A stretch of 61,378 nucleotides of DNA, counting the filler, from Choristocarpus tenellus KU-1152 (Eukaryota; Protista; Phaeophyceae), in assembly GCA_964200185.2 (NCBI GenBank). It is 7 parts of 7 records of this genome, joined end to end, with 100 filler letters (N's around TTAATTAATTAA, not from the genome) between each part and the next. Parts side by side here need not be neighbours in the genome. Positions count along the whole stretch, not along the records: positions 37,189 to 54,046 come from CAXNAD020000754.1; 6 more parts are not named here. One strand, written 5' to 3'. How positions within the stretch are numbered: position 1 is the stretch's first letter; each line of letters begins with the position of its first letter. Below the pieces are notes generated by a model. It did not search any database. It saw nothing but the letters and a program-made list of their open reading frames with translations, and was not told the DNA's origin. Position numbers and translations under genes: made by a program. Positions 37,089 to 54,146 of this stretch are shown here, in pieces.

Positions 37089-37755
37089 NNNNNNNNNNNN
37101 NNNNNNNNNNNNNNNNNNNNNNNNNNNNNNNNTTAATTAATTAANNNNNNNNNNNNNNNNNNNNNNNNNNNNNNNNNNNNNNNNNNNNGGTACAACAATA
37201 CTTGAGGGTACGCAGGGGGGGGGGGATAATACTTGCATATACGTTGAATAACACTTCCGAGTACCTTGCAGGTAAAAAAAAGTTTTGCATACCTCGAGGA
37301 TTGCGAGGCGTTGGCGAGGGACTCATTGATAACAGGGCTCCATCTATCACGATTCTCATTGGGCGACAAGAACCGTGAAGAGGTATCTATCACTCAGGGA
37401 CAGGTGGGGTGTCTACAGGTCTATTCTGAGTGTATTCATTCTTCCTCCCATTCTTGATGCTTCACCATGATGAGAAGAGATTAGGTGCACTCTTAACGCA
37501 CATCACACATAAACTCAACACTTTCTAGCAGACATACCATCCCACCTGTCAATTGACACTTGTTGCGATGGCATCTTATAGCTGGACCTCCATCTTTCTC
37601 ACCCACACCCAGCAGCCCTTTAGCCGTACACTCTCTACCTTTTGTAAGTCCCTCCCTTTTCCTCCTTGCTATCTGGGACTAACTGGAGTGGTTATTGCAG
37701 TTCAGCCAAAGTGAAGCAAGCTGGGGGGTTGGGGTGTGTGCGTGTTGGAGGATTG

Positions 37756-39519
37756 CTATGTTGATAATGGAGGAGGCCGAGGTGGGATGATTCTCGTTAG
37801 CACAATACCATCTTCCTTATATTGTTCATCCAGCATCCCCGGATCCATATCTTCACAGGTGAAACCCATATTCCTCAACGAGGAAAAGAAGAATGCACCT
37901 CCATCCCCTGCCCATCGCCTCTCATGACAGCTCAGCACCAATGAAGCACCCCTCCCCCTCCTGTCTCCGCCCTGTTCTATATCATGTTCCTTGCTGCTAG
38001 ACTCTCTATTGCTCCCATCCCCACAACTGCCGCAACAAATATTCTGCAGCGTGGATGCGAGGGCGAACGCTGTTGATTGGTCACCATAGAGCAGATCTGA
38101 GCAAAGGACAATCCCCTCTGGGTCCAGCCAGGATGCCATTCTCACAGCCTCTGTCTCATCCCCCCACCCCAGCACAGCCCCAGAGACAGTGCCTGCAACA
38201 GAAGGGTTGAGCACAATCGATCGCTCTATTGCTGGAAGGCCCTCCTCCTGTAGTTTGGGAGTCAACATTGAAGAGGGGTCAAGGGGGGAGGGGTGAACTG
38301 ACGGCATCAACCCCTCGCGTTCCACTACTCCTTGAAGCAAAGTCACATCACGTTTTTAGGAGGGAAAGTCTCAAAGTAAACACAGTAATTGGAGGAATCC
38401 TTGTGCTTGAGCGTATGGCTATTGGTCGTCAATGATGCACAGCCTTATCAGATGTGCCAACCTCTGCGAGACGAATAGGCCCCTGATCTTAACCCTCAAC
38501 ACGGCTGGGGACTGATTTCAATAACTCTCCCCATGGCTTCCAATAATGTCACACCATGTCTGTCAGAACGACTCCTTCCGCTCCCAAGACTGCTGCAGCG
38601 ATCCCAGGCAGACCGACGCCACAACCAAGTTCAAGTACCCTCTTTCCTTCAATCTCCTGTGGAGAGGCAAAACGCATGGGCCAATCAGACTACTGGCTTG
38701 AGTGTGGCAACACGACAGGTGCTAAATAATAGTGCAGGGCGTTCCTTCTGATTCAATGGGTTGCGTGTTGTGCCCAGCTACAAACTCAGCAATCCGTTGA
38801 GATTAATTGTCTCATAACTGCTTCAATTTAAGCTAAGAAACGAACAGGCCGAAGATGTCATGGCATGACCATGAATTGAACATATCGAGCTCGCACCTCG
38901 GGTGACTTCTGGAGGTAGTCAACAAGCACCAGGGAGCAGTCCCAAGCCCTGTATTGCTGCCCCGGGGCGTGTTCAAAAATAATAGGACCTCTACAAGTTT
39001 CGACTCGACCCTTTCCCCCACCCTGCGAATTCATGGCAAAGGGGAAAGGGCGCCACATTCGTAAGAGCCAGAGAACATCAGAGATGTGTTGGAACCAACC
39101 TGATGGACCAGCAACTATCATTGAGTAGACGAGACTTTCATTATGATATCCCCGGTCATAAACGAAACGCCTTACATCGTACAAGTCAGCTTGCGTGAGA
39201 CGCCATCCCCTCTGCTGTCTCTTAGACGCAAAGGTAATCGCAGCCTTGAGCTTCTGTTGTTGACGCTCCCCATCTTCAAAAAAATCTCCCTCTATCGCTT
39301 CCAACCAGCCCTGGTTTTATCATGTTCAACATTCACGGTTCAAGGAGAGGTGGTCAAAATAGAATTGCAATATCAAAACATCAACACTTGGTCTCTTCTG
39401 TGAGAAACAGTACACCAACATAATAGGTTGGCAAGGCCCCCACCTCATCCCATCAATGAGGAGGAAGTGGTCCTCCACCTCTAACCCACCTCACTATCAC
39501 TGCTCGACAAATCCCCCAT
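37756..39519 (-). CDS. SAM-dependent protein-lysine methyltransferase (family 16, METTL21-like), ~345 aa
   Basis: complement(join(37756..38247,38555..38656,38897..39310,39490..39519)); all GT-AG, phase 0. Motifs AWDCSLVLVDYL, VLELGCGVGLPG, VVLTD, LGWG, CSDLLY. Confidence 0.9.
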
Positions 39520-39870
39520 CGAAGGTTTATGTAAATCAACTGTCGCCAACCAAAACACCCAACACTTGGAAAATCGAAGATGATGAGTATGGGTAAATAA
39601 TGACTATAACCCTACATACATAATTTTCAAATCTTAATACGTCATGATACGCATATATACGTAGATATAACCTAACTACAAACTGTCATAGTTAATAAGA
39701 CAAGGTCTTCATAGAGTGATCAGTGAATGTGTGATCAACCCACCCATTACATATCAATCTTCGATATGTGAATGAGGCAAAGTAAATCTATGGCATCTAG
39801 GTGACGAATCTGGCAAGGTAGTACTATTCCCAGGAATCCCATAAGTCTGTTTGATAGCATTCGAGACTGA

Positions 39871-41465
39871 ATGAACTCTCCAGGTGGAGACGAGACCACC
39901 CCTCTACTTGAGAGGGAAAGAAGGCCTGGTCGGAGTAATGATGGTCCCTTAGTCTACCTCGAGAGGTTTCCCAGGAGAATGGTCGAGGTCTGCTATGGAT
40001 ATTCCCTCTCAGTGGTCATTACAGCAGTACTTGGAGCGGTGAGTATCCAGACTTTCGGTCACAATCCCCGAGTGTATTGGAGTAGATATATTTCGTGGCA
40101 TTACATTTTTTCCGATTCTCGTCTTGTTCCTTTGCTACAATTCTAATGTATCAGCATCGAAGAGTGTATCTACTGTTTGTTGAACCGTGGATGTGTTCCC
40201 TTCCTGATTTGTAGAGGGGGGCACTAGGGAGAGAATTTTATCAAGTACAACCCTCCGCTGTTGACATGATATATAATACTCCTATACAACAGGTGACCAC
40301 TGGTGGTGTGGTGAGTTTTCCCTCGGTAGTTTACATCTTCCCTATACTGGTGGCCCAAATCTGGCTCGTGGTCGAGCTGATTGTTGCTTATAAGTGCATG
40401 GGGCGCGCAATGCAGGGTGGGAACAGCCCACCTAGACGTCGGGGACGGCAGTCACGGCCCACCCCTTCCCGCACTCGGGTGGAGGAAAGAGGGGAATCGA
40501 GAGGCAGACGTAGAGAGAGCCAGTCGCGTTCGCGCAAGCCCGTCAGTCCTAGGATTCGCATCATTGGTCTTGTACGGCTGTGGTACAAGTTATGGGCGGC
40601 ATTGGTGCTGGCTGCCCTTGTCTTGGGGACGTTCGAGGGCCTTCTGATGGCAAGGATACTAGGAACGCCTTCTTCACAATTGAAAACGAGCGTAGTCATT
40701 AGCCCCCTCCTGGCTGGACTTGCCCTATCTGTCTTTTTTGCTGTTGTTATCCGCAATCTAGGTAAGACCAAGGTGAGCCTGTTGGGACTCACCATCCTCT
40801 TCCTATCTTTGCTCAGCGCCAAACTGGATGCCACGGAGAAACATCAGGAAGAACGTAAAAGTTACAAGCCGGTTGCATCCTATTCTTGGTTGGTAGTGTT
40901 TATCCCAGTATGGATTGGTGCCGGAGTGTTTTTGACAACATACACCAGAATCTTGTGGGGCAGGCGCATTTCACGTGTACTAGAACTCACAGCAGCACAA
41001 GAGGCCGCTAGTGTCGCTGTTGTTGTGGGCACTGCCATTCTGGTCCTTTGTAGTGCCCTGCTCTGCCACCTTTTGGTGGGTGGGTGGTTAGTATGGAATG
41101 GTGGGTCATTGGTGAATGTCTCCTCAGCTACTCTCACGGCGACCTTGCTGTTGGCAGCAACGGGAGGGGCGACGATTGCTTGTGGGATTCGTCAGGTGTT
41201 CCTGGAGCGGGTGGCTGCACTGGTGGAGACTGGTGTCCCTGATTCTATACCGCTGCCTGTATCCTACAGTAATGAGTCACACGGGTGGGTTGCAGATGAG
41301 GGGGCGTTGAAATATCTGTCTGTATTCCTGTTGGGGACAGTTAGGCAACGGCAGGCAATACATGGTGAGGATGTAAGATTTAATGAGGAAGGAATGCAAG
41401 GTAATAGGTATGCTGGGGAGGTTCTCCCAAGCTGGAAGAACTCGTCAGATGCCTCGCCTACATGA
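39871..41465 (+). CDS. Multi-pass membrane protein, TMEM185/Fragile-X-F-like
   Basis: join(39871..40038,40293..41465); about 7-8 hydrophobic segments; signature LLSAKLD...SWLVVFIPVWI; N-terminal ETTPLL dileucine motif. Confidence 0.75.
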
Positions 41466-42429
41466 TTGCCTACGCCACTGCTTGTACCTTGAAGAATGAG
41501 GAATGCATTTCCAATTTTGAATTATGGGGGACGTGTTTTTTTGCTCTACTTTGATCTTTCTACTCCTGAGATACCCAAATTCTTTGGAGACACACTGTTT
41601 ATAGAATGTAGACTATCGTTTTAGATACCAATATTAGTGTACCTAAGCTGTTATTGCCTGTAATGTGGAGGACAAGATCATATAGAATTGCATAGTTTAG
41701 AGGATTGCTGAAGTAGGGTCTGATAGTAGCCAATGTTTACACATCATTGATATGGATATATATATATATATAATCACCACATGCAGTCTATGCCCATCTT
41801 TCGGTGTACATAGTTGAATCCCACCCATTGTTTCTATGGCTGAATGTGTGCACAAATTACACTTCTGGTTGCTAATTTCAAGATTAGTGCGTAAGGAAAA
41901 AATGATTGGATGAGCCCATTACTTAGGTACAAGTTCTTGATACCCACAAGACTGCTGGGTGGTCTTGTTTCATTTTGCTCTGCTCCAAAAGACAGGTATA
42001 AATGTAGGGTAATCAATTGAGAAGAACAATCACAAAAAACGATTCTCAACAACTCAAGAATTGAGAGTTTTGTAGTGAAGGAACAATAAAATGTGACACA
42101 CACAGGATTGTCCGATCTGGAATATCCATGTGTAGCAACTTGTCACTGTGACAAGGACCACCTCTCGGATCAGTTGGACATAATTGAGCCTTCTCTATTG
42201 GGAGTGATCACACAGTTCCATTGTTCTCTTCTCAGGAGTACGTAGAGAAGCAGTAGTGGTTGATCATGGAACACAGGATACGGGGATGTGTACACGTTTA
42301 CAACCTTTTCTAAATGCACCTTCAACAAGAAATTCAAAAGAGTGAAAATGAAACATGAAAGGGAGGAGTGGGGAACAGATAAAATATATCACCACAAATG
42401 TACTGAGCTCGTTTGAATTGCCACTGCCA

Positions 42430-45040
42430 TCATTTACCTCTTTGGAGAATCTTCATCCACCTTTTGTATAGCTGGTTCTCTGCCTCAAATCGACCTTGTG
42501 CACCCAGCCACACTTGAGACATCCCACAGGCAACACGCAGCACAGTGGCTGAGGGCTCCCTTCTTGTAATCTCCCTTGACTCGTCGTCAATTTCTTTCTT
42601 TGCTAACATCCTCCTGGACTGATCTTCTCTTCCAGAGGTGTAACTCTCCCCAGTGGCAGGGGTAAGCGGCTCTGTACTGGATGGAACGACCTCACCCTCA
42701 CTCTTCAATGGTGTTCTGCTACTGGTAGAAGTCTGATGGCGCACCGCATTGCCAGAAGCCAGGTCCTGCAACTCGACCTTGGGATGGATGCTAGTCTTGC
42801 TCTCCTCTACCATTGTTTCCATTGCGCAACCCATAGAAGTCGGCAGGTGTAAATTCTTGCTGCTAGGAAGAGACTGCAGCTTGGTCTCGGAATACACAAC
42901 ATCGCTTATCTCACCATGTTTTGCGGTGATATTGGGAGGATGCATGGCCTTGCTTGGTGCCAAAGCACGAAGCTCAGCCTTGGAATAAACAGCCTTGCCC
43001 ATCTCTTCCGCTGGTTTTGTTGTGGTACTGGCAGGAGTAGCGTACTGTACATTTTTTCTGGAAGTCATGGATCGCAGCTCGGTGAGGGAATACACCAATT
43101 TGCTCGTCATACCCTCTGTTATGGTGATATTGAGAGGGTCCTCTACCTTGCTGGGTGCTAAGGCCCGCAACTCTGTCATGGAATACACCAACTTGACACT
43201 CTGCCTTGCCGCCTGTTGGAGTGCCATATCCCTCACTGTTGTCAAGTTGTAAGCAACCTTTCGTCTTGGTTGTCTACAAAAATCCCCTTCCAGGCCTGCG
43301 GCAACCGTCATTTCACCCTTGGAACTGTCACTCCTCGAGGAACCAGACCCATCCTCAGACTCCCCTGCTGAGGATAGAGCATCAGAGGACTTGTCCTCAT
43401 TGCCCTTCACATCCTCCTCTCCTTCAACGCAGCAAAGACATGGCACACCGGTGAGGGATGCTAGTCCATCTTGGAACCTACTTATGTCTGATGCAGAGAA
43501 GGCAAGCACTTGCTTGTTTTCTGAGAGCTGTCTTGAAATCCATCCCACGTCGTCCTGTGAAAAGGGGAGGAGGGGTAAATATTGGTGTCGGTAGGTATGA
43601 GCAGTGCCTGACCGTCATTACATGTGGAGAAGTGAGGAACAGTGGGAACTTTGTAAGGCATGGTTCTATAGGTACAGAGGCACTCTATTTCTCAGCTGTA
43701 AAAATCAACGCTTATTGCAGGGGCACAATGTGTGCATAGTGTGCTAGTTAGAAAAGTATTTGCCACAAAATGTGCTCTACTTGACGAGAATACGAACAAG
43801 TGTGAGCACTATTAAACAGCTTTCAAAAAGTTGTGCCAATCAAGATAAGACAGCAAGGAATGATGTATCAACACTACACCTGTTTACCGCCAAGGTCGAG
43901 GGAGGTGCTTCAGGATAATACCTTCTGCCTTACAGACAGTGCACCGAACTGTTTTGGGTCCATCTACTAGGCAATCTTCGTCCACATACGACAGAAACGC
44001 CGAGGAAACTGACGATCAACGCACTACCTTGGATCGGCAATCTGAAAAACGCTTAACACATTTAGCCATAATACCACTTCACCTGAAAGATCGGTGCCAT
44101 TAACCAATCAGCAGAATCGACCACCAGTAGTTGAGCTGACCTTGCAATCAACGCCCCCTTCCCCATCAAATACCGCACTCGCCCTGGAGTTCCGACAGCC
44201 ACGTGGCAACCGGTAGCTCCTAGGGATTTGATATCTTCATATGCAGGAATGCCTCCAACAAAAGTGGAACAAACAAAACCTTGCCGGCCAGAGCCGAGTC
44301 TTTGGATTGTATCCTGTTAGTGTTGGGATAGATCTTAGGATTGGTGAAACCGCAAAAAACCGAGCTTGCAAACGTACGCTATTGCCTACATTCGCACTTC
44401 AATCGGGGGCCAGCAGGAGTCAGAGGTCGAGAAATGTTGAAGCACTGGTTGACCACTCCCTTGTGCATCTTACCCACCTTTGTAGATATCGCCATTTCCC
44501 TTGTCCGTGTCAAGACCAATGTTTGCAATATCGCTTTCTGGTTCCATTCTGGGCCACTAGACTCCACGACAGCTCCCCTATCACCCTCACCGTGTTTCCC
44601 GCTACTAGCGATAGATAGGAGATGTGGGCGGAATTTCTCCAGGATGACCACAGCAAAGGTCAGAGTGGTTTTCTTCCCCGACTTTGCCTGGAGATTGCGA
44701 TTGGATGGAGGTGGCCCAAACATCAGTCTGTGCGGTCCTCCGCCACCGAGACTACAGCCAAGCAGAAACTATCTATCACACTTTCCTGTGCAGTATGATT
44801 CAGGGTTCATTGTTTGAAGCATCTTTGCGTTGGTTGTACTCCAGCAATGAGCGTATACACGATGTACATGTGATGGCATCATGCCTTTGGTGATAAGCCC
44901 ACCTGCACGAGGATACTCTCCCCTTTACATCCTTTCTTCCATATTTCAATTTGAAGTGCAGACGGTTTGGAGGCTCCATCAGCCTCCAACGCCTCCAATA
45001 TTGACTGCGATAGTCCCAGTTCCATGTTCTCGAATGCCAT
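42430..45040 (-). CDS. DDX20/Gemin3-like single-RecA pseudo-helicase with C-terminal repeats, ~567 aa
   Basis: complement(join(42430..43554,44083..44313,44478..44687,44903..45040)); all GT-AG, phase 0, no stops. Q motif (PSALQ), VQAKSGKKTT, LVLTRTRE, FVGG, VAVGTPGR, VVDSAD, FQDDVGWI...KQVLAFSAS. Confidence 0.88.
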
Positions 45041-45579
45041 TTCTCAACTACTCACAACTCACAATTGCTGTTTTAGATGAATGGAGCCAGCCTCGCATGT
45101 TTCAGTATATTTGTTGCGCGCAGATGAGTACGTTCGCTTAAAAAACCAACCGTGACCATGTGTACATTCCCTAAAATGATACCCTCCAACTGAACGAAAG
45201 AGGTTCTTCTTGATAAACACAACTATACTGTGGGTCAAAACGGGAAGGCCATTCCATACCGCACCTGGTACCTACAATGTAATAGGCGAACATGGCTCGG
45301 CTTCCTACAAAGTATTGACACCTATGTCTATAATATGACCTCATCCCTCCAGTACATTAGCGTTTCATGTGTTGGTAGTGAGCGTACGGTCATACTTGAT
45401 CCAATTTTCTCTCATGATATTTACTGCTAATAATTGTGAGCGCATTATGATTCGAACTAATATGAGATAATCAATTAATCATCATGCATACGAAAGCAAG
45501 ATGAGTGCTCATCATCCCTCACACGTTCTGTTGTTGTTAGAGGAGTTGGCGTCCTTGAAGTTGAAGGGGAGTAATCGAT

Positions 45580-45690
45580 ATCAAACCATAAATTCCATCT
45601 GTGCGTAGACGACGAGAGTGCAAGCAATCCAGTATGTTGTAGGAGCGTATCTTGCCAAGGAGGGCAAGTTTCTGCCATTGATCACTTGCA
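45580..45690 (-). pseudogene. Possible hAT transposase dimerisation-domain remnant
   Basis: Frameshifted LPSLARYA / YNIL / SSST, reminiscent of P-x-LA-x-x-A-x-x-L...SS. Weak. Confidence 0.2.
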
Positions 45691-46206
45691 TAGCGCTCTC
45701 GATCGCTAACAAGAGATAGATTGAGGTGATTGGTTGTTTTTAAAACTTTGCATCATTGCCAAAGCAATTCGCCTGGCAAACTCACTACCACCTTGAACGC
45801 ATCTCCCTGATGGATGGCCACCCCCTGGCTGTGATCAGTCCATGCATACCCAAAGAAGTGCTTCAGAACACAGTCAAATCTTCCAAAAGCCTGTACATAG
45901 CAACAAAAACGGGGATGGGGCTCGCATTTCTAAAAAACGACCAATCACAATCAAAACATTGGCATAATTCAAAAACAATGTTAATCGTGTAACAACAACA
46001 GGAAACATATAGTGTTGTTGATGAATGGCAACATGCCATAAAAGGCCACTGTGTAGTAGGCAAAAAAATGAGCAATCTCGCACTCCATAAAACCCTATTC
46101 GGTAGGATAAGTGTTCAGGTGTTCGCCCACATCTGTACCCATCAATGGTCTTTCTAGTGACTCATCAAAGTTCTATTGAAGAAGTCTGATTCCTCTACAG
46201 CTTCAT

Positions 46207-46253
46207 AGGAGGAGGAGGAGGAGGAGGAGGAGGAGGAGGAGGAGGAGGAGGAG
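46207..46253. repeat. (GAG)n microsatellite
   Basis: About 15 perfect triplets. Confidence 0.95.
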
Positions 46254-48929
46254 AACATTTCTTACTCTAAAGCTTGTTTTTGTGAAGCTTGAAAGTGCCA
46301 AATTGTGTAAGCCAATGAGATTTGTTTTTTCACTTGGTATGCAATGGGACAAACTCCTGTTGTACTGTATTTCTGGTGACTGAAGCCATAGACAAAACCA
46401 AGTAGATATACTTGATGGTTGTACAGATTCTCAGGAGGATGATGGTATATACCATAGGTTGCAAACTGTTAATTCACAACGTCCGAACATGAGTCGCCAT
46501 GAATTTGGGTCAAGATACACCACAAGAATCGTTCTTGGGGTGTTTGAAGAGTGTCATTCGTTGGGGGAAAAAATAGGTCCTTCACTTTCATGCTTGTCTG
46601 TAGAAATCAGAACAATATTTATTCAAAAACAGAAAGCACATTAGAACCCTCAAGTGCCCAGTGAATTGACCAAACACCCCCAAACTGCAGTCTTCCTAAA
46701 TAGGAAATGTCCTTTTTTTTGCTGAATACATCGATAGGCAATAGGAAGTGGAGCACCAAAGTTACTGCTTCACCCCATTTGCCATACACACATCAATAGA
46801 TTTGTACATCTGTTGAAAAAAAAAGTTAATTTTCTTGAAACACCTTTTTCAGAACAATTCCCGACATATATAGATGTGAAGTTCTATGAAGTCAAAAAAG
46901 AGAGTAACGAGTGACATCATAGGTCAGGCAATTACAATATTGAAAAAGACAATCCACAAGACAAAAGGGGTTATGTGAGGTGATCATTATCAGATTCACC
47001 ATCCAAAACAGGCAGGATAGGAACCCTCCAATTGTGAGAATTTGGTAAGCACAACCCTATATTTGTGTCAAACATTACAACTACCTATTGACAATGACTG
47101 GTGACAACATGGTTGTTGTAATGTTTGCCTGACATGTGGAACATTGATATACATTCTTGATGTGATGTAAGGATATGGTCTGGGAATATTGCCCTTTTTT
47201 CCTCATCTTGCTATCGGTCTTTGATTTCCAATGGTTAGTAATAACACCTCTAACCTACAACAAAAACTAGGATGTTCTTCAACCATGTGTGAATTTTTGA
47301 TTGGTAGAATCACTCTGGCTTTAGGCTGCTGCAGATACTAAACCCCATAGAGTTTTGGATTGGTATAGAGATAACCAGTGTTTTGAACGGGTCTAATTGA
47401 TCTATTGCCATGGCCCGATTCTCTGCCAGGAGGTGAGGTAGTAGGGATTTTGGAGTAGTGCGAGCTTGATGCCAACTACCACCTCCATTTTACCTGTCGT
47501 ATTCTGAAGTTTACATATATCTAGACACACCCCTTCCTACTGTTCACACAACAGTTGAAAATAAGGACAAGTAGTTCTTTCTCACCTACGGGTAAACATA
47601 CTTAAAATTCCTGTGATGTGAACCCTCTTGTTATCACAACAATAATAAAATATTAGAAATATCTACGCTAGAAGCTGGCACCCACGAACGTTTTACTGGA
47701 TGCGCGCTTGAGAGGGAGGAAAAAAGTGCCAAGCACTGCATACCAGTTACACATGGAGAATACTTCGGACCCACTAATTGACCTCATAGCATCCAACAAA
47801 AGCCATTGTACAGGCGTCACAACTATCACATGGAAAATAAAGTGGACTATATACTGAGCAGAGAACTACAGGGGGCATGAGAGGAAAATCAATGATTACG
47901 CTAGCTCCTTGGCAAGGTGTGCACTATAGATAAAGGGGGCAGTCAAGTGGCCAAAGGCAGATTGATTTGCACCTTCCATAGTGCGGCTTGGCCCATTCAA
48001 AGACATTTGCGCAGCACAAGCAGCTCCTCACCAAAAACACTACACCGCAGGTATCCAAGGTTGAATCACAGATTCACCAGGCACAATACACTGTACTTCG
48101 TACAATGGAGAAAGTTTCACACAACAGAAGAGGCATTGCTAAGGGGGTGCACATCAAGGGCATTCCACAAATATGCGTTCTAACAGACAAGAGGATTAAG
48201 GAAACAACAAATGAGATCAACCTGTAACCTAGGGCAGCAGACCAGCCTTTTTCCATTGATAAGCAGTGAAGTGGTAGATGATAAAACCGGATGAGTTAGT
48301 TACCAAAGACCCGATAAAAACATTCCTTCCAGTACTTCAGTCATGCTAATGCCATCTTGCAGACCCTGCCCCACCTGCAGTAAGAGATGCCTTGATCTGT
48401 AGCCAATCCCCTACCCCTCCCAAAATCCATGATTCACAAAGAAATTCAAATTTCTTTTGAAGACTAAGAACCCAGTCACACCTCACCCCTTCAATCTCTC
48501 CATTTCCCTTGAATTTCTCTCAACCACCTACAGACAACCAACCATAAGGAGAGCCTCTGCAGTAGGCACCCTACATCTCTTTTTCACTCTACTATTAAAT
48601 GGAGACTCAATAAAAATCTTCGCATCAAAGCCTGAAAGTCTTGCAGTAAGTCACAAGACCAGCTACAACAGCATCACACACAGTGCTAGATGCCTGTACC
48701 AACAATATCACTTCCTGGAACATCCTCGGTAAAGCATAGACCAGCCAGAATTTGGTACATGCCACGGAAGCTGGACAGGCCTGATGTGTGGTAGGATAGA
48801 AACGAGCAATTCAACAGATCCCCCTTCACTGCTGGGACTCCCAAGGATTTTGGACTGTGCATGCATCCACCCCCATACATAACAGCAGTTCCAACTGACA
48901 CAATGGTAATACTAATTAAGCACGGCTTC

Positions 48930-49913
48930 TCAGTGAATGCCGGAGAAGTTTCCTTCATCCCGTTCCTCATCCCATTTCTCGACCTGGCGGCGTGGACGAA
49001 AGGGGACACCATGATGAGAGCAAGAATGTGCATGGAGGGTGTCAGCACAAGCGTTGGGGGCGTGAGGGTAAGAGAGGATTGATGAGCAAATCCCTGACTG
49101 AAGGATAACAAACTTGCTCATCCGAAAACTTGGCGGCATTGGGTTAGGACGTCGAGAGCGTTCGAAACAAATTTACAGGAAAGATGACACACCTAAGCTC
49201 TTGTTTGAACGCTATGTAAAACAAGACTACGAACAGCACAATATCTTCGGGGAAAATATGAGCCGATCCAGGACAATCAACTCACCCATTCGTTAGGACA
49301 GAGAGATACGGCAAGCTGCCGGTGAGGCTTGCAGGCGTCCTCGTCACCGTCAGCGTTCTTCACACAGAGAACCCACTCGTTAAACTTTCCCCTGAGGTCG
49401 AAAGCGAGACAAAATACATCGACAAAGTATGCGAGTTTAACCTCGAATAAAGGATCGCATGGGAGGAAGTATTGAAAAGCAAACAGGATCTCCGTCTCAC
49501 TGCATACACCACTCCAAAATTCTCTTTAGGAGTGGATGTTTAATATACCTTCAATGGTTAACGCAATTTGCTGCAAATGAAAAGAAAGAAGAGACCGCCA
49601 TGATGAAAGCATAGGCACAGAGAATTGCACCGAAATCATGTTGAGCAAGCTTCAAGGACAAAGGAAGACCCTGGCCAACTACCTTTCCCCTTCCAAATAT
49701 ACCAAGGCCTCTTTTTCGACCTTCCTAGTATGATAATCGATATATCGGAAACAATAAGAAGTCCAAACGTCGAACAGACCAGCGCAATATAAATCCCGCA
49801 ACTTTTTGATGTGATCTCTTCTGGAACACGTACCAGCAGTGGCTGGCTTGGTTGAAAAGCGGGTACCGGCTGTCCGCTGAGGTTGTCTTGACCTTCTCAA
49901 CCATAGATGACAT
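48930..49913 (-). CDS. COX6B: Cytochrome c oxidase subunit 6B (Cox12), 79 aa
   Basis: complement(join(48930..48983,49286..49391,49834..49913)) gives ...TTSADSRYPLFNQASHCWGKFNEWVLCVKNADGDEDACKPHRQLAVSLCPNEWVEKWDEERDEGNFSG; CX9C/CX10C pattern. Confidence 0.95.
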
Positions 49914-50280
49914 CCTAGTTCAGAATCAAAGAGCTCAGAGTAGCGCCGAAAATAAATCCTTCTCCTCCTTTAATGTTGATTGCACTGTAGACACTATGCC
50001 TGTTACACCTTCTCCACCAAGTACACTCACTTATCTGTCCTTCCCTCACTACTACTGTTTCTTGTTTCTTTTGGTAACAAAATTGTTTTTTTTCCACGGC
50101 GTGCAGCTGAAAGCGCGATGATTTTCGATTTTGCCGTTTAGTTTTCACAAACCTACTTCATGAACTCAAATCTTAAAAGTAAAGGTTGTTGCAAACGTTG
50201 TGGTCTTTCCAAAATCGGTGCACTCAGAACTTCAAGGTTGAACTGATTCTCCACGACGTAAGTGGCGGCAAGTTCTAAGG

Positions 50281-51932
50281 ATGGAGGAGCATCTCCAGCT
50301 GCTCGAGTTGGATTTCAAGAGTGTCGCTAATGACCTTGACTTCGCAGCATGTCGCCTGGACACTAAAATGGCTGTGCGGGGAAGGTGGGTCCTTAGAAAT
50401 AAGTTGTCACCGATAAAGATTGCTACTGCTAGATAAATCCTGGGTCGACTCAGGGCACAGATACATCTTTCATTTACCTTGAGCTCATCGAGACTAGGCA
50501 TTCGTATGGTAAAAAGATTAATTACATTGACCAGATACTGGATATAGGGAACAAACCCCCTTAAAATTAGTTTTTTCGAACTCCTGCTGATCGCATTTTC
50601 GCAATGTATCCCTTCCCCAGAGATGAAACCACTGTTCCTGATGTGCACAACCTTCTGGTGCGAATTGAAGAGTTGCAGAAGGAGGTGCCTCTGCTAGAAG
50701 AGAGTATGATGGATGTCATCAGGAGGGTCAAAGTGAGATAGTATTAGTTTTGGTCTTGACCTCAACTTGTTGCAGCTAGAGGTTGTCCATTTTGGGAACT
50801 TAAGTTGGTGGTTGCTGGCAATTGCCTCAATTCTTCTGCCAGATTCTCTTTTAACACAAAGGAGTCAAAATAGATGCCCCCCTGCGAATGTGCACTAGAC
50901 AGGGGTAGACTGGGAAGAAGCAAGGGGATGGCCCATAATGACTTGAGCCTGGGCTTTTACACTTAGCTTGCGCTGGGTCAATCTCTGTTTGCAGGGTGTA
51001 TTGAAGCCATGGGTCGCTTCTTCTGTTGCCTTAGACACTGGTGTCCTTCCTGGGGTGCAATGATCCAATGGACTGTTAAAAGCACATCATTTGAGCATGC
51101 ATTGCGACACCAAATAGCTTGGAAGGCGCATAAACTAGCATGGACATGTGGTACGATGCCTCTCGCTAGAAATTTCCCTTCTATTTGTAAATATTTGTTC
51201 TAAATGAACACGAAACACGAACAAAATTCTTATAGGCGGTGGAGTCGACGCTATCCACGTCTGCGGTCAGCACCCACGACAGCATGCTCCGAGTTTACTC
51301 TCGCCTCGGATGTGAACCAGGTGGGAAGGGAGGGAAAGAAGAGTAGCTGCAGGGATTCATATTGGTGGAGGGGTTATCTTTATTGATGTCAATTGCGCAG
51401 TGATTGACTCGTTTTCATGTACTCTGTTATCCTCTCATACGTATTCTGGGGAGGGCAGTAAGATAGGTGGGAGTTGGGAGAGTAAGACCTTGAGGTTGTG
51501 ACCTATGAACGCAATAATGCACATGCCTGTTTTGCACACCCTCTACAGTTGGATAGATTTTTCATGCATCTTGGAGATGATGGAAAGTTGATTGTACCAT
51601 TATTGCTGACATAATGTTGGTACAAATCAACCATCTTGGACAACATACCATGTACCATTATTGCTGACATAATGTTGGTACAAATCAACCATCTAGTCCA
51701 TTGGACAACATCTTCGATCTGATTTCAAACATCAACCATCTTGGCCATTGTCACCCCTTTCCCCCATTTGCCATGTCTCCTTGGCCGTGAACCATGTCAT
51801 GTTCTGTTCTGTACTTCACCTGCTGTAGATGGAGATTGGGTTGCTGAGGCGAAATCAGTCAAGGCCTGGATGCAGCGGACAGGTCAGCACTCAACCCTCA
51901 TTCTCATCATGCTGTTTGATTGCATTGCATAG
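50281..51932 (+). CDS. SKA2: Spindle and kinetochore-associated protein 2-like
   Basis: Exons 50281..50384, 50621..50732, probably 51236..51320 and 51829..; MEEHLQLLELDFKSVANDLDFAACRLD resembles the Ska2 N-terminus (LExxFxKAxxDLDYxxxRLE). 3' end uncertain. Confidence 0.7.
51593..51694. repeat. 58-bp tandem duplication (in putative SKA2 intron)
   Basis: tgtaccattattgctgacataatgttggtacaaatcaaccatct occurs at 51593 and 51651. Confidence 0.9.
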
Positions 51933-53036
51933 ACAATACGAGCTAGTATTGGATCATTGCTGTTTTTTCCCTCTAATACTGAGTGGTAGATGTCATTCTC
52001 CCCCCTCCACCCACACACACTGAAGACACTCACAAGCACAGTGCTAAGGAGAGCACGCCAGTGCTCAGAGATGTGTAACCTTGATCAGCAAGCGCTCGAT
52101 GGACTGATCGAGTTGGGCATCATCTGTGCAGCAGGGTGATCTACATGCACTTTGATGATAGGTTTACAATTTGTGTTGTGTAGGGTGTGTGCAACAAGAG
52201 TTTTTATATATGGTTGTGAGGCGGTGCAGTGTGCGAATGGGGGAAGATTCGTCTTTTTTCTTGTTTAAGAAAAAAGATCCTTGACCGTCGCATTGTTCCG
52301 ATTCAACAAACTTGAGGCAAGCGCCTCACACGAGAATATTCCCCCTTCCTCCCTCCCTTCCTCTTCCCCACGACTGTGTACCCTTGACCTGAGAACGTAT
52401 AACTCAGTAAAACATAGGTCGTTACCATCTGTAACTGTAAGTAAAACGAACTTGCTTTGTACATATATATATATATATACATATCGACACGGTCTCGAAA
52501 ATCTTAGCTGTTGTTATCTCATCAACAGCAGAATCATGTTGCTTTTTGCTCCTAATGCCTTCGTCAGCACCCCTCCCTCACTGTTGTGCCACCCCAACAT
52601 CCCACTCTTGCCGTACATATCCCTGCCCCCCCCCCTCCCCCCCTTTTTTTCTCCACCCTTCTGCTGTGGGCCATCTTATTGCCTCGAACTGTGGGCACTT
52701 CTTGGGTAGGTTCTAGTAAGGATGGGGGCGGCGGCGGCTGTGGCGGTGACAGGGGAGAGGGGAGTGTTGTTGTCCCAGGGGGAGGGGGTGAAGAAGAGGA
52801 AGAGGGGGAACAGGAGCATGGTCGACCGCGACAAACGATGTGCGTGGTTAGAATGACAAATCTTGTTTGTCGTGGACACATTCATTTGATGCGTTGTTGG
52901 GGGATTGCACTGTGTTGGATCAATGCGGTTTGATCGTGAGGAAGTGAGTCATTCATTCCATGTGTGTCTTGCCTATGGCTTTTGGGTACTGTTGGGGTGA
53001 TGGGACTATCGATGTTGCATCTAAAGGAGATATGTT

Positions 53037-53073
<37 letters not shown>

Positions 53074-54146
53074 TTCAGTGTGCTTGCTCGGGGAGTGTTC
53101 CACGTTTTTCTTTTTTTCTTTGAGATCTTGAATGCTGGAGAGTGCGTGTTAGCCCCCATCCCACTTAATCCTAGGCCCAGGAACACATATTTTGCTACTC
53201 TGGTTGTGATTTTGGCCACAAAGCTACTTTGGCCGTTGATGTCTCTGTCTGTCTGTCTGTCTGTCTGTCTGCTGTGGACAGTTACGCTCTTGCATTTGTG
53301 ATGCTAACCGGTGAACACTCCATCGGGTGGGATAGGAAATACTGTGCTTTTATTTGACACCATAATCTCAACTGTGTGCATGTGCTCGTGCATGCCAACT
53401 TCCAATCTTTCCTGTTCTTGTCCGAAACCATCTCGAACCAGTATCATACTTCAACTTCAACTTCAACTTCAACTGACAGTAGTTTCTTATTTTCTGTTTG
53501 CGGGTGGATACATGTTGGGGGGAACGGGGACGTTGACGGGGGCGGGGGCGGGGGTGGGGGGATTTGAAATGATTACGTGGTTATTGCAACTTAAGCTCGG
53601 AGGGTGAATTTCTGGCAGTGAGCGGTATCGTTCGTGGACGATGCAAGCTGGAAGACGTCCAAAAGGTTAACATCCCAGCATTCTAGCTGATGGTGCTTGA
53701 GCACGTATCTACTGCACCCGGTGTGGTTTGGGTGTATTCACAGATCGTCATGTTTTTACAGTGGTAGTAGTTGGTGTTAAATGTGTTCACTGCTGTGGAC
53801 ATGGTAGCTCTCTCTCTCTCTCTCTCTCTCTCTGTGTTTGCATACTTGAGAGGTGAAAACCGTTTCACGTTATATTAAGGATTTTGTTCTGTGCTATGTT
53901 TTTTATTTTTCCATTCCGTAGGTGTCTCGTAACAGTATCGGATTGTTTCCGGCAGCAGTCTTGCCCCCCCCCCCCCCCCCTCGGCTGCCCCCCCGGGGCC
54001 CCCCTCCGCCTCTTCACCTTGGGGGGGTGGGGAGGGGGGTGGGAGGNNNNNNNNNNNNNNNNNNNNNNNNNNNNNNNNNNNNNNNNNNNNTTAATTAATT
54101 AANNNNNNNNNNNNNNNNNNNNNNNNNNNNNNNNNNNNNNNNNNNN

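Follow-up and report, generated by a model that had tools for sequence, protein, structure and literature searches.

The ATPase activity of DEAD-box proteins requires the Lys and Thr residues of the Walker A motif, the Glu residue of the Walker B motif and arginine residues from the second RecA lobe (RecA2), which close on ATP and RNA. Pseudohelicases, helicase-derived proteins whose catalytic motifs have been lost or are dispensable, have newly been recognised as organisers of ribonucleoprotein (RNP) machines. Utp25/Def, a validated DEAD-box pseudohelicase, superimposes on eIF4A over domains 1 and 2 (PMC9539457), while MUT-15 serves as the scaffold of a nuclease-tailing complex (bioRxiv 10.64898/2026.09.04.749402). 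The stretch of DNA analysed here (the window, 61,378 nucleotides from the brown alga Choristocarpus tenellus KU-1152) carries a gene, between positions 42430 and 45040, which belongs to the same broad category and originates from DDX20/Gemin3. It is an expressed DDX20/Gemin3 descendant, devoid of RecA2 and of the residues handling ATP, which is likely functional, most probably as a non-catalytic adaptor. Like Utp25/Def and MUT-15, the protein is derived from a helicase and has lost catalytic motifs, and it may also share with them a role as an RNP scaffold. Unlike Utp25, which keeps both lobes, it possesses the first lobe (RecA1) only and has a DDX20 origin. This conserved, non-catalytic, single-lobe DDX20 derivative is a new form among the known pseudohelicases.

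The part of the window inspected spans positions 37189-54046 (16.9 kb, CAXNAD020000754.1). Translation of four exons on the minus strand, from 45040 to 42430, gives a product of 567 amino acids (46 + 70 + 77 + 374 codons) with zero internal stops. All three introns, as read from the sequence, start with GT, end with AG and are in phase 0. The start codon is the ATG at 45040, preceded two codons earlier by an in-frame TGA. The features of the gene are as follows:

44903..45040, minus strand: exon 1, 46 amino acids, with the start ATG and the Q-motif region PSALQ (44951-44965)
44688..44902, minus strand: intron 1, 215 nucleotides, GT..AG, phase 0
44478..44687, minus strand: exon 2, 70 amino acids, with motif I AKSGKKTT (44664-44687) and motif Ia TRTRE (44496-44510)
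44314..44477, minus strand: intron 2, 164 nucleotides, GT..AG, phase 0
44083..44313, minus strand: exon 3, 77 amino acids, with GG (44251-44256), GTPGR (44179-44193) and DSAD (44107-44118), followed by WLMAPIF
43555..44082, minus strand: intron 3, 528 nucleotides, GT..AG, phase 0
42430..43554, minus strand: exon 4, 374 amino acids and the stop codon (42430-42432), with motif III SAS (43489-43497)
42856..43260, minus strand: five short tail motifs, exon-4 residues 99-233
42433..42492, minus strand: C-terminal helix with R-x3-E-N-Q-L-Y-K-R-W-M, from alignment A1 and AlphaFold2 (AF2) prediction

Exon 2 contains a lineage-specific insert of ~25 amino acids between motifs I and Ia, and the first ~45 amino acids of exon 4 complete RecA1 before a tail of ~330 amino acids. 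The motifs required for catalysis are degenerate: Walker A reads AKSGKKTT and departs from the consensus A-x-x-G-x-G-K-T, motif Ia reads TRTRE, motif II reads DSAD instead of D-E-A-D, and motif III reads SAS instead of S-A-T. The Q-motif PSALQ with its Gln residue, the GG doublet and GTPGR are retained. No RecA2 motif (e.g. HRxGRxGR or [AS]RG[ILVM]D) was found by a regular-expression scan of the six frames of positions 37189-54046, exon 4 returned zero Pfam matches, and Helicase_C (PF00271) with its motifs IV-VI is absent from exon 4, from the six-frame scan and from the orthologues. Because the Walker A Lys and Thr, the Walker B Glu and the RecA2 arginines are all missing, the protein would, according to established DEAD-box biochemistry, be unable to act as a DEAD-box ATPase. 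The original prediction, made from the DNA alone, had described four exons with phase-0 introns and no stop or frameshift, a last exon of 374 codons, the same readings of motifs I, Ia, II and III with the Gln, GG and GTPGR kept, and the absence of RecA2 motifs. Retranslation and the splice sites reproduced the gene structure and the motif readings exactly, and the six-frame scan of the 16.9 kb, with the Pfam scan of exon 4, extended the last observation.

The gene is transcribed and spliced. The locus is represented in three public runs of one study, X1, X2 and X3; X1 and X2 contain unspliced genomic sequence, while X3 is taken as RNA from its behaviour, the kind of library not being on record. 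X3 record 19 (480 nucleotides, depth 233) joins 43553|44082 and 44312|44477, which corresponds exactly to introns 3 and 2. At its end, three shared letters past 44687 are followed by nine loose letters, CACGAGGAT, identical to positions 44906-44914 at the end of exon 1, and this loose end gives the third junction, 44687|44903. Since this record spans introns 2 and 3 and ends with the loose letters of exon 1, all three junctions foreseen by the original prediction are supported by one intron-less contig. X3 record 17 (depth 265) is colinear with the genome from 43557 to 42000 without any joint and extends ~1.7 kb further, so that one unspliced piece contains exon 4 with its stop codon, followed by no less than 430 nucleotides of 3′ sequence. 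A further contig, X3 record 18 (43555-43854), continues out of exon 4 into intron 3 with a depth of 10.8, as compared to 233-265 for the spliced contigs, and suggests a minor intron-retaining or pre-mRNA fraction.

The protein was compared exon by exon in Pfam, PDB and homology searches. Exon 3 is the sole exon matched by Pfam DEAD (PF00270), with 23.4 bits, under the 26-bit cut-off. The comparison of DEAD with Helicase_C, proposed initially as a check, was thus favorable for the absence of Helicase_C, while the DEAD match itself is sub-threshold and restricted to exon 3. In the PDB, the best match of exon 3 is the DEAD domain of human DDX20 (2oxc; 38.4 bits, E 9.9e-9), with eIF4A3 at 30 bits. 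The PDB matches of exon 1 are weak (E ~0.7), and 12 out of 12 are Q-motif regions of DEAD-box proteins, in register. Exon 2 alone has no PDB sequence match, as the insert of ~25 residues splits motif I from motif Ia, nor do the first 50 amino acids of exon 4 alone. For the whole exon-4 product, no homologue was found among 5.8 billion proteins, nor did the ESM Atlas provide a usable match. All four exons nevertheless line up in order on one brown-algal protein, exon 1 aligning to P0010 197-220 and exon 2 to P0010 230-301 (and also to loci L002 and L001), and the same order is found on the RecA1 domains of the family described below and of DDX20, which places the protein among the RecA1 (DEAD) domains. 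Judged from sequence, the match of exon 3 to 2oxc, the in-register matches of exon 1 and the ordered four-exon alignment indicate that the resemblance to DEAD-box proteins is not due to chance.

This protein belongs to a family conserved in brown algae. An exhaustive HMMER search with exon 3 returned 19 proteins at E < 1e-10, with family matches up to E 1.7e-20, and the best of them share the dead motif II and its flanks, LVLDSADWLMAPVFQ or LVLESADWL(I/M)APVFL, which defines the family signature D/E-S-A-D-W-L-x-A-P-x-F. Named members are from Scytosiphon promiscuus, Laminaria digitata, Nemacystus decipiens and Cladosiphon okamuranus. Pfam DEAD was detected without Helicase_C in the Cladosiphon protein P0156 (92 bits in two stretches) and in the Nemacystus protein P0010 (59 bits), while a canonical DDX20 used for comparison, P0020, contains both domains. 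In four further assemblies (loci L001, L002, L004/L006 and L005), the exon boundaries are identical to those of the Choristocarpus gene, and in the last exon a single open reading frame (ORF) leads from EDVGW through the C-terminal motif to the stop codon, with no RecA2. Motif I is more decayed in brown-algal copies, where it reads GRPG(D/K)ETAT. GG and GTPGR are invariant in the eight genomic copies (8/8), and D/E-S-A-D-W-L is found in 14 of 14 family copies.

Selection was assessed on exon 3 only, using the Nei-Gojobori method. Among family members, the ratio of non-synonymous to synonymous substitution rates (dN/dS) ranges from 0.04 to 0.26 (e.g. dN 0.03 vs dS 0.85, or dN 0.09 vs dS 1.49), these values being rough since dS is near saturation. 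Pairs including the Choristocarpus copy have proportions of non-synonymous differences (pN) of 0.26-0.31 against saturated proportions of synonymous differences (pS) of 0.79-0.83. With pN far below pS, neutral decay is excluded, even though high dS makes the values rough. A dN/dS near 1 without orthologues would have been expected of a pseudogene; orthologues exist and the ratio is low. The view that the gene has been repurposed rather than abandoned, already put forward by the original prediction, is thus sustained by transcription, splicing, orthologues with a dead motif II and low dN/dS.

Several lines of evidence establish DDX20 as the closest relative among DEAD-box proteins. When the exon-3 region (76 columns) was analysed by maximum likelihood, the Choristocarpus copy and all brown-algal copies formed one clade (100/98) with a long stem, located among DDX20-like sequences and with eIF4A3 outside; with these 76 columns, the exact sister group of the clade receives 92/78 support only. 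After the family itself, the next best matches of exon 3 are DDX20-like, and the best named relatives of P0020 are the DDX20 proteins of animals, Mortierella and Pythium. The RecA1 domain also retains the VQAKSG and F-x-x-D-V-x-W-I ... KQVLAFSA contexts of DDX20/Gemin3, and the DDX20 structure 2oxc is the best match of RecA1 both in sequence and, for the modelled Cladosiphon domain, in structure. The assignment to DDX20, initially based on such motif contexts, is supported by the best PDB match, the tree and the shared C-terminal motif described below. In contrast to DDX20/Gemin3, the Choristocarpus protein has no RecA2 or Helicase_C domain, its Walker A, DEAD and SAT motifs are degenerate, an insert separates motifs I and Ia, and its disordered tail with repeated short motifs is unrelated.

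Within the family clade, the first split separates the Choristocarpus copy from all brown-algal copies (92/90), a position expected of a brown alga from an order not sampled here or of a close ochrophyte relative. The brown-algal genes encode two dead RecA1-like domains, in the order B then A. Type B domains carry VKNREIA, ESADWL and A(S/T)ST, and type A domains carry TRTREMA, DSADWL and FSGA. In L001, L004, L005 and the protein P0202, the last exon of B continues without stop into the first exon of A; the Cladosiphon model covers both domains, and in the Nemacystus model P0010 only the N-terminal part of B, up to and including motif Ia, is joined to A. The two-domain loci are:

L001:3500-10910
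L004:30-4050 with L006:8122-8349
L005:945-5525
proteins P0156 and P0202

B and A probably form one protein of about 1200 amino acids. Because the B copies are a clade (99/98) nested in the brown-algal group, the duplication occurred after the split from the Choristocarpus lineage. No second family copy was found in the window and no B-type domain within 9 kb upstream of the gene. The term 'single-domain' used by the original prediction is hence correct for the window and does not apply to the brown-algal orthologues, which have two dead RecA1-like domains in one frame. These results also amend gene models, as the Cladosiphon and Nemacystus proteins and other exon fragments previously had no name or only a generic DEAD annotation.

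The C-terminus provides another link to DDX20. In alignment A1, made of the exon-4 products, invariant columns are found at the start (DVGW, Q15 and AFS, which correspond to the end of RecA1) and at the very end (R355, E359, N360, Y363 and W366). The Choristocarpus protein ends with ENQLYKRWM, in line with the family pattern E-N-x-L-Y-x-x-W. Canonical protist DDX20 proteins share the pattern E-x-x-phi-Y-x-x-W-phi, as illustrated by P0020 (EERLYESWL), P0274 (EDKLYDSWI), P0275 (EEHVYDSWI), P0277 (ENDLYDTWI), P0120 (ENSMYDRWV) and Pythium brassicae P0373 (EEACYERWL), and the aromatic motif of DDX20 is thus present in the Choristocarpus protein. Owing to this match, the protein is, as far as its sequence tells, a DDX20 of which both ends are kept and the middle is lost.

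AF2 prediction of the Choristocarpus exon-4 product, using only seven sequences, returned disorder (mean predicted local distance difference test, pLDDT, of 44) except for a C-terminal helix at residues 345-372, in which residues 361-370 reach a pLDDT of ~81. The Cladosiphon A domain (P0156:704-950), modelled with alignment A2, is confidently predicted to adopt a RecA1 fold (pLDDT 89.6, predicted template modelling score 0.87) with the motif I-Ia insert as a low-confidence loop. The best PDB match of this model is DDX20 2oxc (E 5.8e-16, template modelling score 0.90 by target); since A2 included canonical DDX20 sequences, the model supports fold compatibility and is no independent proof. In the disordered tail, five copies of [VA]-Y-[SN]-x3-[LV]-[RQ]-x-[LM] (VYSxxELRxL-like) occur between residues 99 and 233, 22-35 residues apart. 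None of 20000 shuffles reached five copies (maximum 1), a significance which is overstated as the pattern was defined post hoc. Tandem Repeats Finder detected no DNA-level repeat beneath these motifs. A single similar copy, KVYRVDELRTM, is found in L002, and other brown-algal copies have (I/M)RT(L/V)G(M/E)(M/I)R(A/E)(E/D)SARRAQ at a comparable place.

A mechanism can be proposed from these observations. Loss of the whole RecA2 lobe and, within RecA1, of the Walker A Gly-Lys-Thr, the Walker B Glu and SAT would leave a protein incapable of DEAD-box-type ATP binding and hydrolysis, and hence of clamping or unwinding RNA. Selection would have maintained three elements: the RecA1 fold with its RNA-backbone motifs (the TRE core of Ia, GG and the TPGR of Ib), a new invariant patch at the dead motif II (D/E-S-A-D-W-L-x-A-P-x-F), and the C-terminal amphipathic helix E-N-x-L-Y-x-x-W, as in canonical protist DDX20. 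This helix would dock an ancestral partner of DDX20, plausibly an assembly complex of the SMN/Gemin2 type for small nuclear ribonucleoproteins (snRNPs). The RecA1 lobe may serve as a static binding face for RNA or protein, and the disordered tail with its five VYSxxELRxL motifs could bring in several molecules of a further partner. The case for a non-catalytic RNP adaptor is made by transcription and splicing, purifying selection, the new patch, the retained RNA-contacting motifs and the inherited terminal helix.

Several points weigh against this interpretation. We infer the adaptor mechanism, as well as the identity of the partners and the 'scaffold or decoy' function of the original prediction, and the motifs Ia, GG and Ib may have been retained for the stability of the fold instead of RNA binding. 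All assessment of the Choristocarpus protein was made on single exons, of which exon 2 by itself has no PDB match. The closeness of dS to saturation and the composition of A2 temper the selection and modelling results. The tail motif is not strictly conserved, its Tyr being replaced by Arg in L001, L004, L005, P0010 and P0156. Finally, contig depth is zero over 44736-45191, which leaves the 5′ end of the mRNA uncovered and an upstream exon possible, although the in-frame TGA two codons before the ATG speaks against it.

A more far-reaching version of the adaptor hypothesis, tentative and rather doubtful in our judgment, concerns the fate of Gemin3 itself. According to it, brown algae and their near relatives would have turned their own Gemin3/DDX20 orthologue, and not a spare paralogue, into an ATP-independent RecA1-only scaffold. 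Brown algae proper then duplicated the dead lobe in tandem within a single frame (B-linker-A), so that a non-catalytic clamp of two lobes, both derived from lobe 1, may have been restored. Choristocarpus would have kept the single-lobe state which came before this duplication. The presence or absence of a canonical DDX20 decides between this wholesale conversion of Gemin3 and a paralogous adaptor or decoy. No brown-algal canonical DDX20 was found among the 150 best matches of exon 3 or the 120 best matches of P0020, most of which are not assignable to an organism. Inspection of the short matches, of cluster names and of the samples from which P0275, P0146, P0123 and P0023 derive pointed, where a source was traceable, to nothing but marine metagenomes, green algae and a cryptophyte. 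A literature search returned nothing relevant joining Gemin3/DDX20 with brown algae, Ectocarpus or stramenopiles.

The same searches bear on a decoy function, in which the protein would act as a dominant-negative competitor for the partners of a canonical DDX20 encoded in the same genome. Conservation of the DDX20 C-terminal motif despite loss of the enzymatic function speaks for a decoy, and at least one stramenopile, Pythium, does possess a canonical DDX20. The failure to find a brown-algal counterpart argues in the other direction, in a manner which is not conclusive given how few matches could be assigned to organisms. In addition, long conservation followed by duplication of the dead domain fits a positive role at least equally well, and we regard the decoy as unlikely.

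The tail repeats led to consideration of a different activity, namely multivalent regulation of translation through eIF4E-binding motifs (Y-x4-L-phi). Sequences of this type are known from DDX3 (Y-x4-L-R) and yeast Eap1 (YSMNELY), and the regularly spaced repeats comprise four Y-x4-L and one Y-x4-V. However, all five repeats have Arg or Gln instead of a hydrophobic residue at the phi position, most brown-algal orthologues have Arg in place of the Tyr residue, and the repeats are modelled with low confidence. As both the hydrophobic phi and conservation among orthologues are lacking, eIF4E binding appears improbable.

Even less credit can be given to an incomplete gene model, with a RecA2 exon beyond the inspected part or a split helicase whose RecA2 lobe is encoded separately. 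The uncovered 5′ end and the 16.9 kb to which inspection of the genome was confined leave some room for it. Against it, X3 record 17 is colinear with the genome and shows no joint along exon 4, its stop codon and the next 430 nucleotides of 3′ sequence, the orthologous last exon ends in four genomes with the same C-terminal motif and stop codon, and the Cladosiphon and Nemacystus models are devoid of Helicase_C. Moreover, based on established DEAD-box biochemistry, RecA2 supplied in trans could not restore ATPase activity to a lobe with dead Walker A and B motifs. Finally, a decaying DDX20 pseudogene with frames left open by chance, which might be suspected from the degenerate motifs I, II and III, the missing RecA2 and a tail without homologues in 5.8 billion proteins, is barely conceivable in view of the high contig depth, splicing at all three predicted sites, recurrence of the architecture and intron positions in several brown-algal genomes, pN far below pS and the invariant terminal motif. 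The RNA and conservation evidence led us to reject both the missing-exon and the pseudogene explanations.

Another family was considered on account of weak Pfam matches. CMS1 (PF14617), a subunit of the 90S pre-ribosome, gives matches overlapping DEAD in exon 3 (14 bits) and in the orthologues (19-24 bits), and membership was rejected as the cut-off is 35 bits.

Regarding the surroundings of the gene, a convergent neighbour at 40266-41465 on the plus strand is a single ORF of 399 amino acids for which many membrane helices are predicted, together with a sub-threshold match to Tmemb_185A (18.9 bits, cut-off 23.1). X3 record 17 extends ~1.7 kb below 42000, and the convergent transcripts may be co-assembled or overlap at their 3′ ends. 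An ORF at 38858-39304 on the minus strand has a homologue at L006:1270-1407 (E 9.5e-7, 46% over 45 amino acids), which lies on a brown-algal contig, in a different orientation and ~6.7 kb away from the B domain encoded by the family gene; this constitutes weak microsynteny. Upstream of the gene, 45152-45187 and 45301-45356 have short matches to unrelated X1/X2 contigs, with 2-3 differences before the sequences diverge, and have the appearance of short dispersed repeats. At a distance of ~1.2 kb, the gene is preceded by a perfect (GGA)16 microsatellite (46207-46254). Neither Rfam nor tRNA scans gave any match in the inspected part.

The Choristocarpus gene and its relatives represent a single-RecA-lobe derivative of a DEAD-box protein, with DDX20 ancestry and a putative docking motif retained from DDX20, conserved across a major multicellular lineage. 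The family amounts to a natural separation-of-function allele, pointing to the parts of Gemin3 that matter once ATPase and unwinding activities have been removed, and it raises the question of whether snRNP assembly in brown algae does without a Gemin3 helicase. If the conversion of Gemin3 is true, the role of DDX20 in snRNP assembly, or in another RNP process, would run without a helicase in these organisms.

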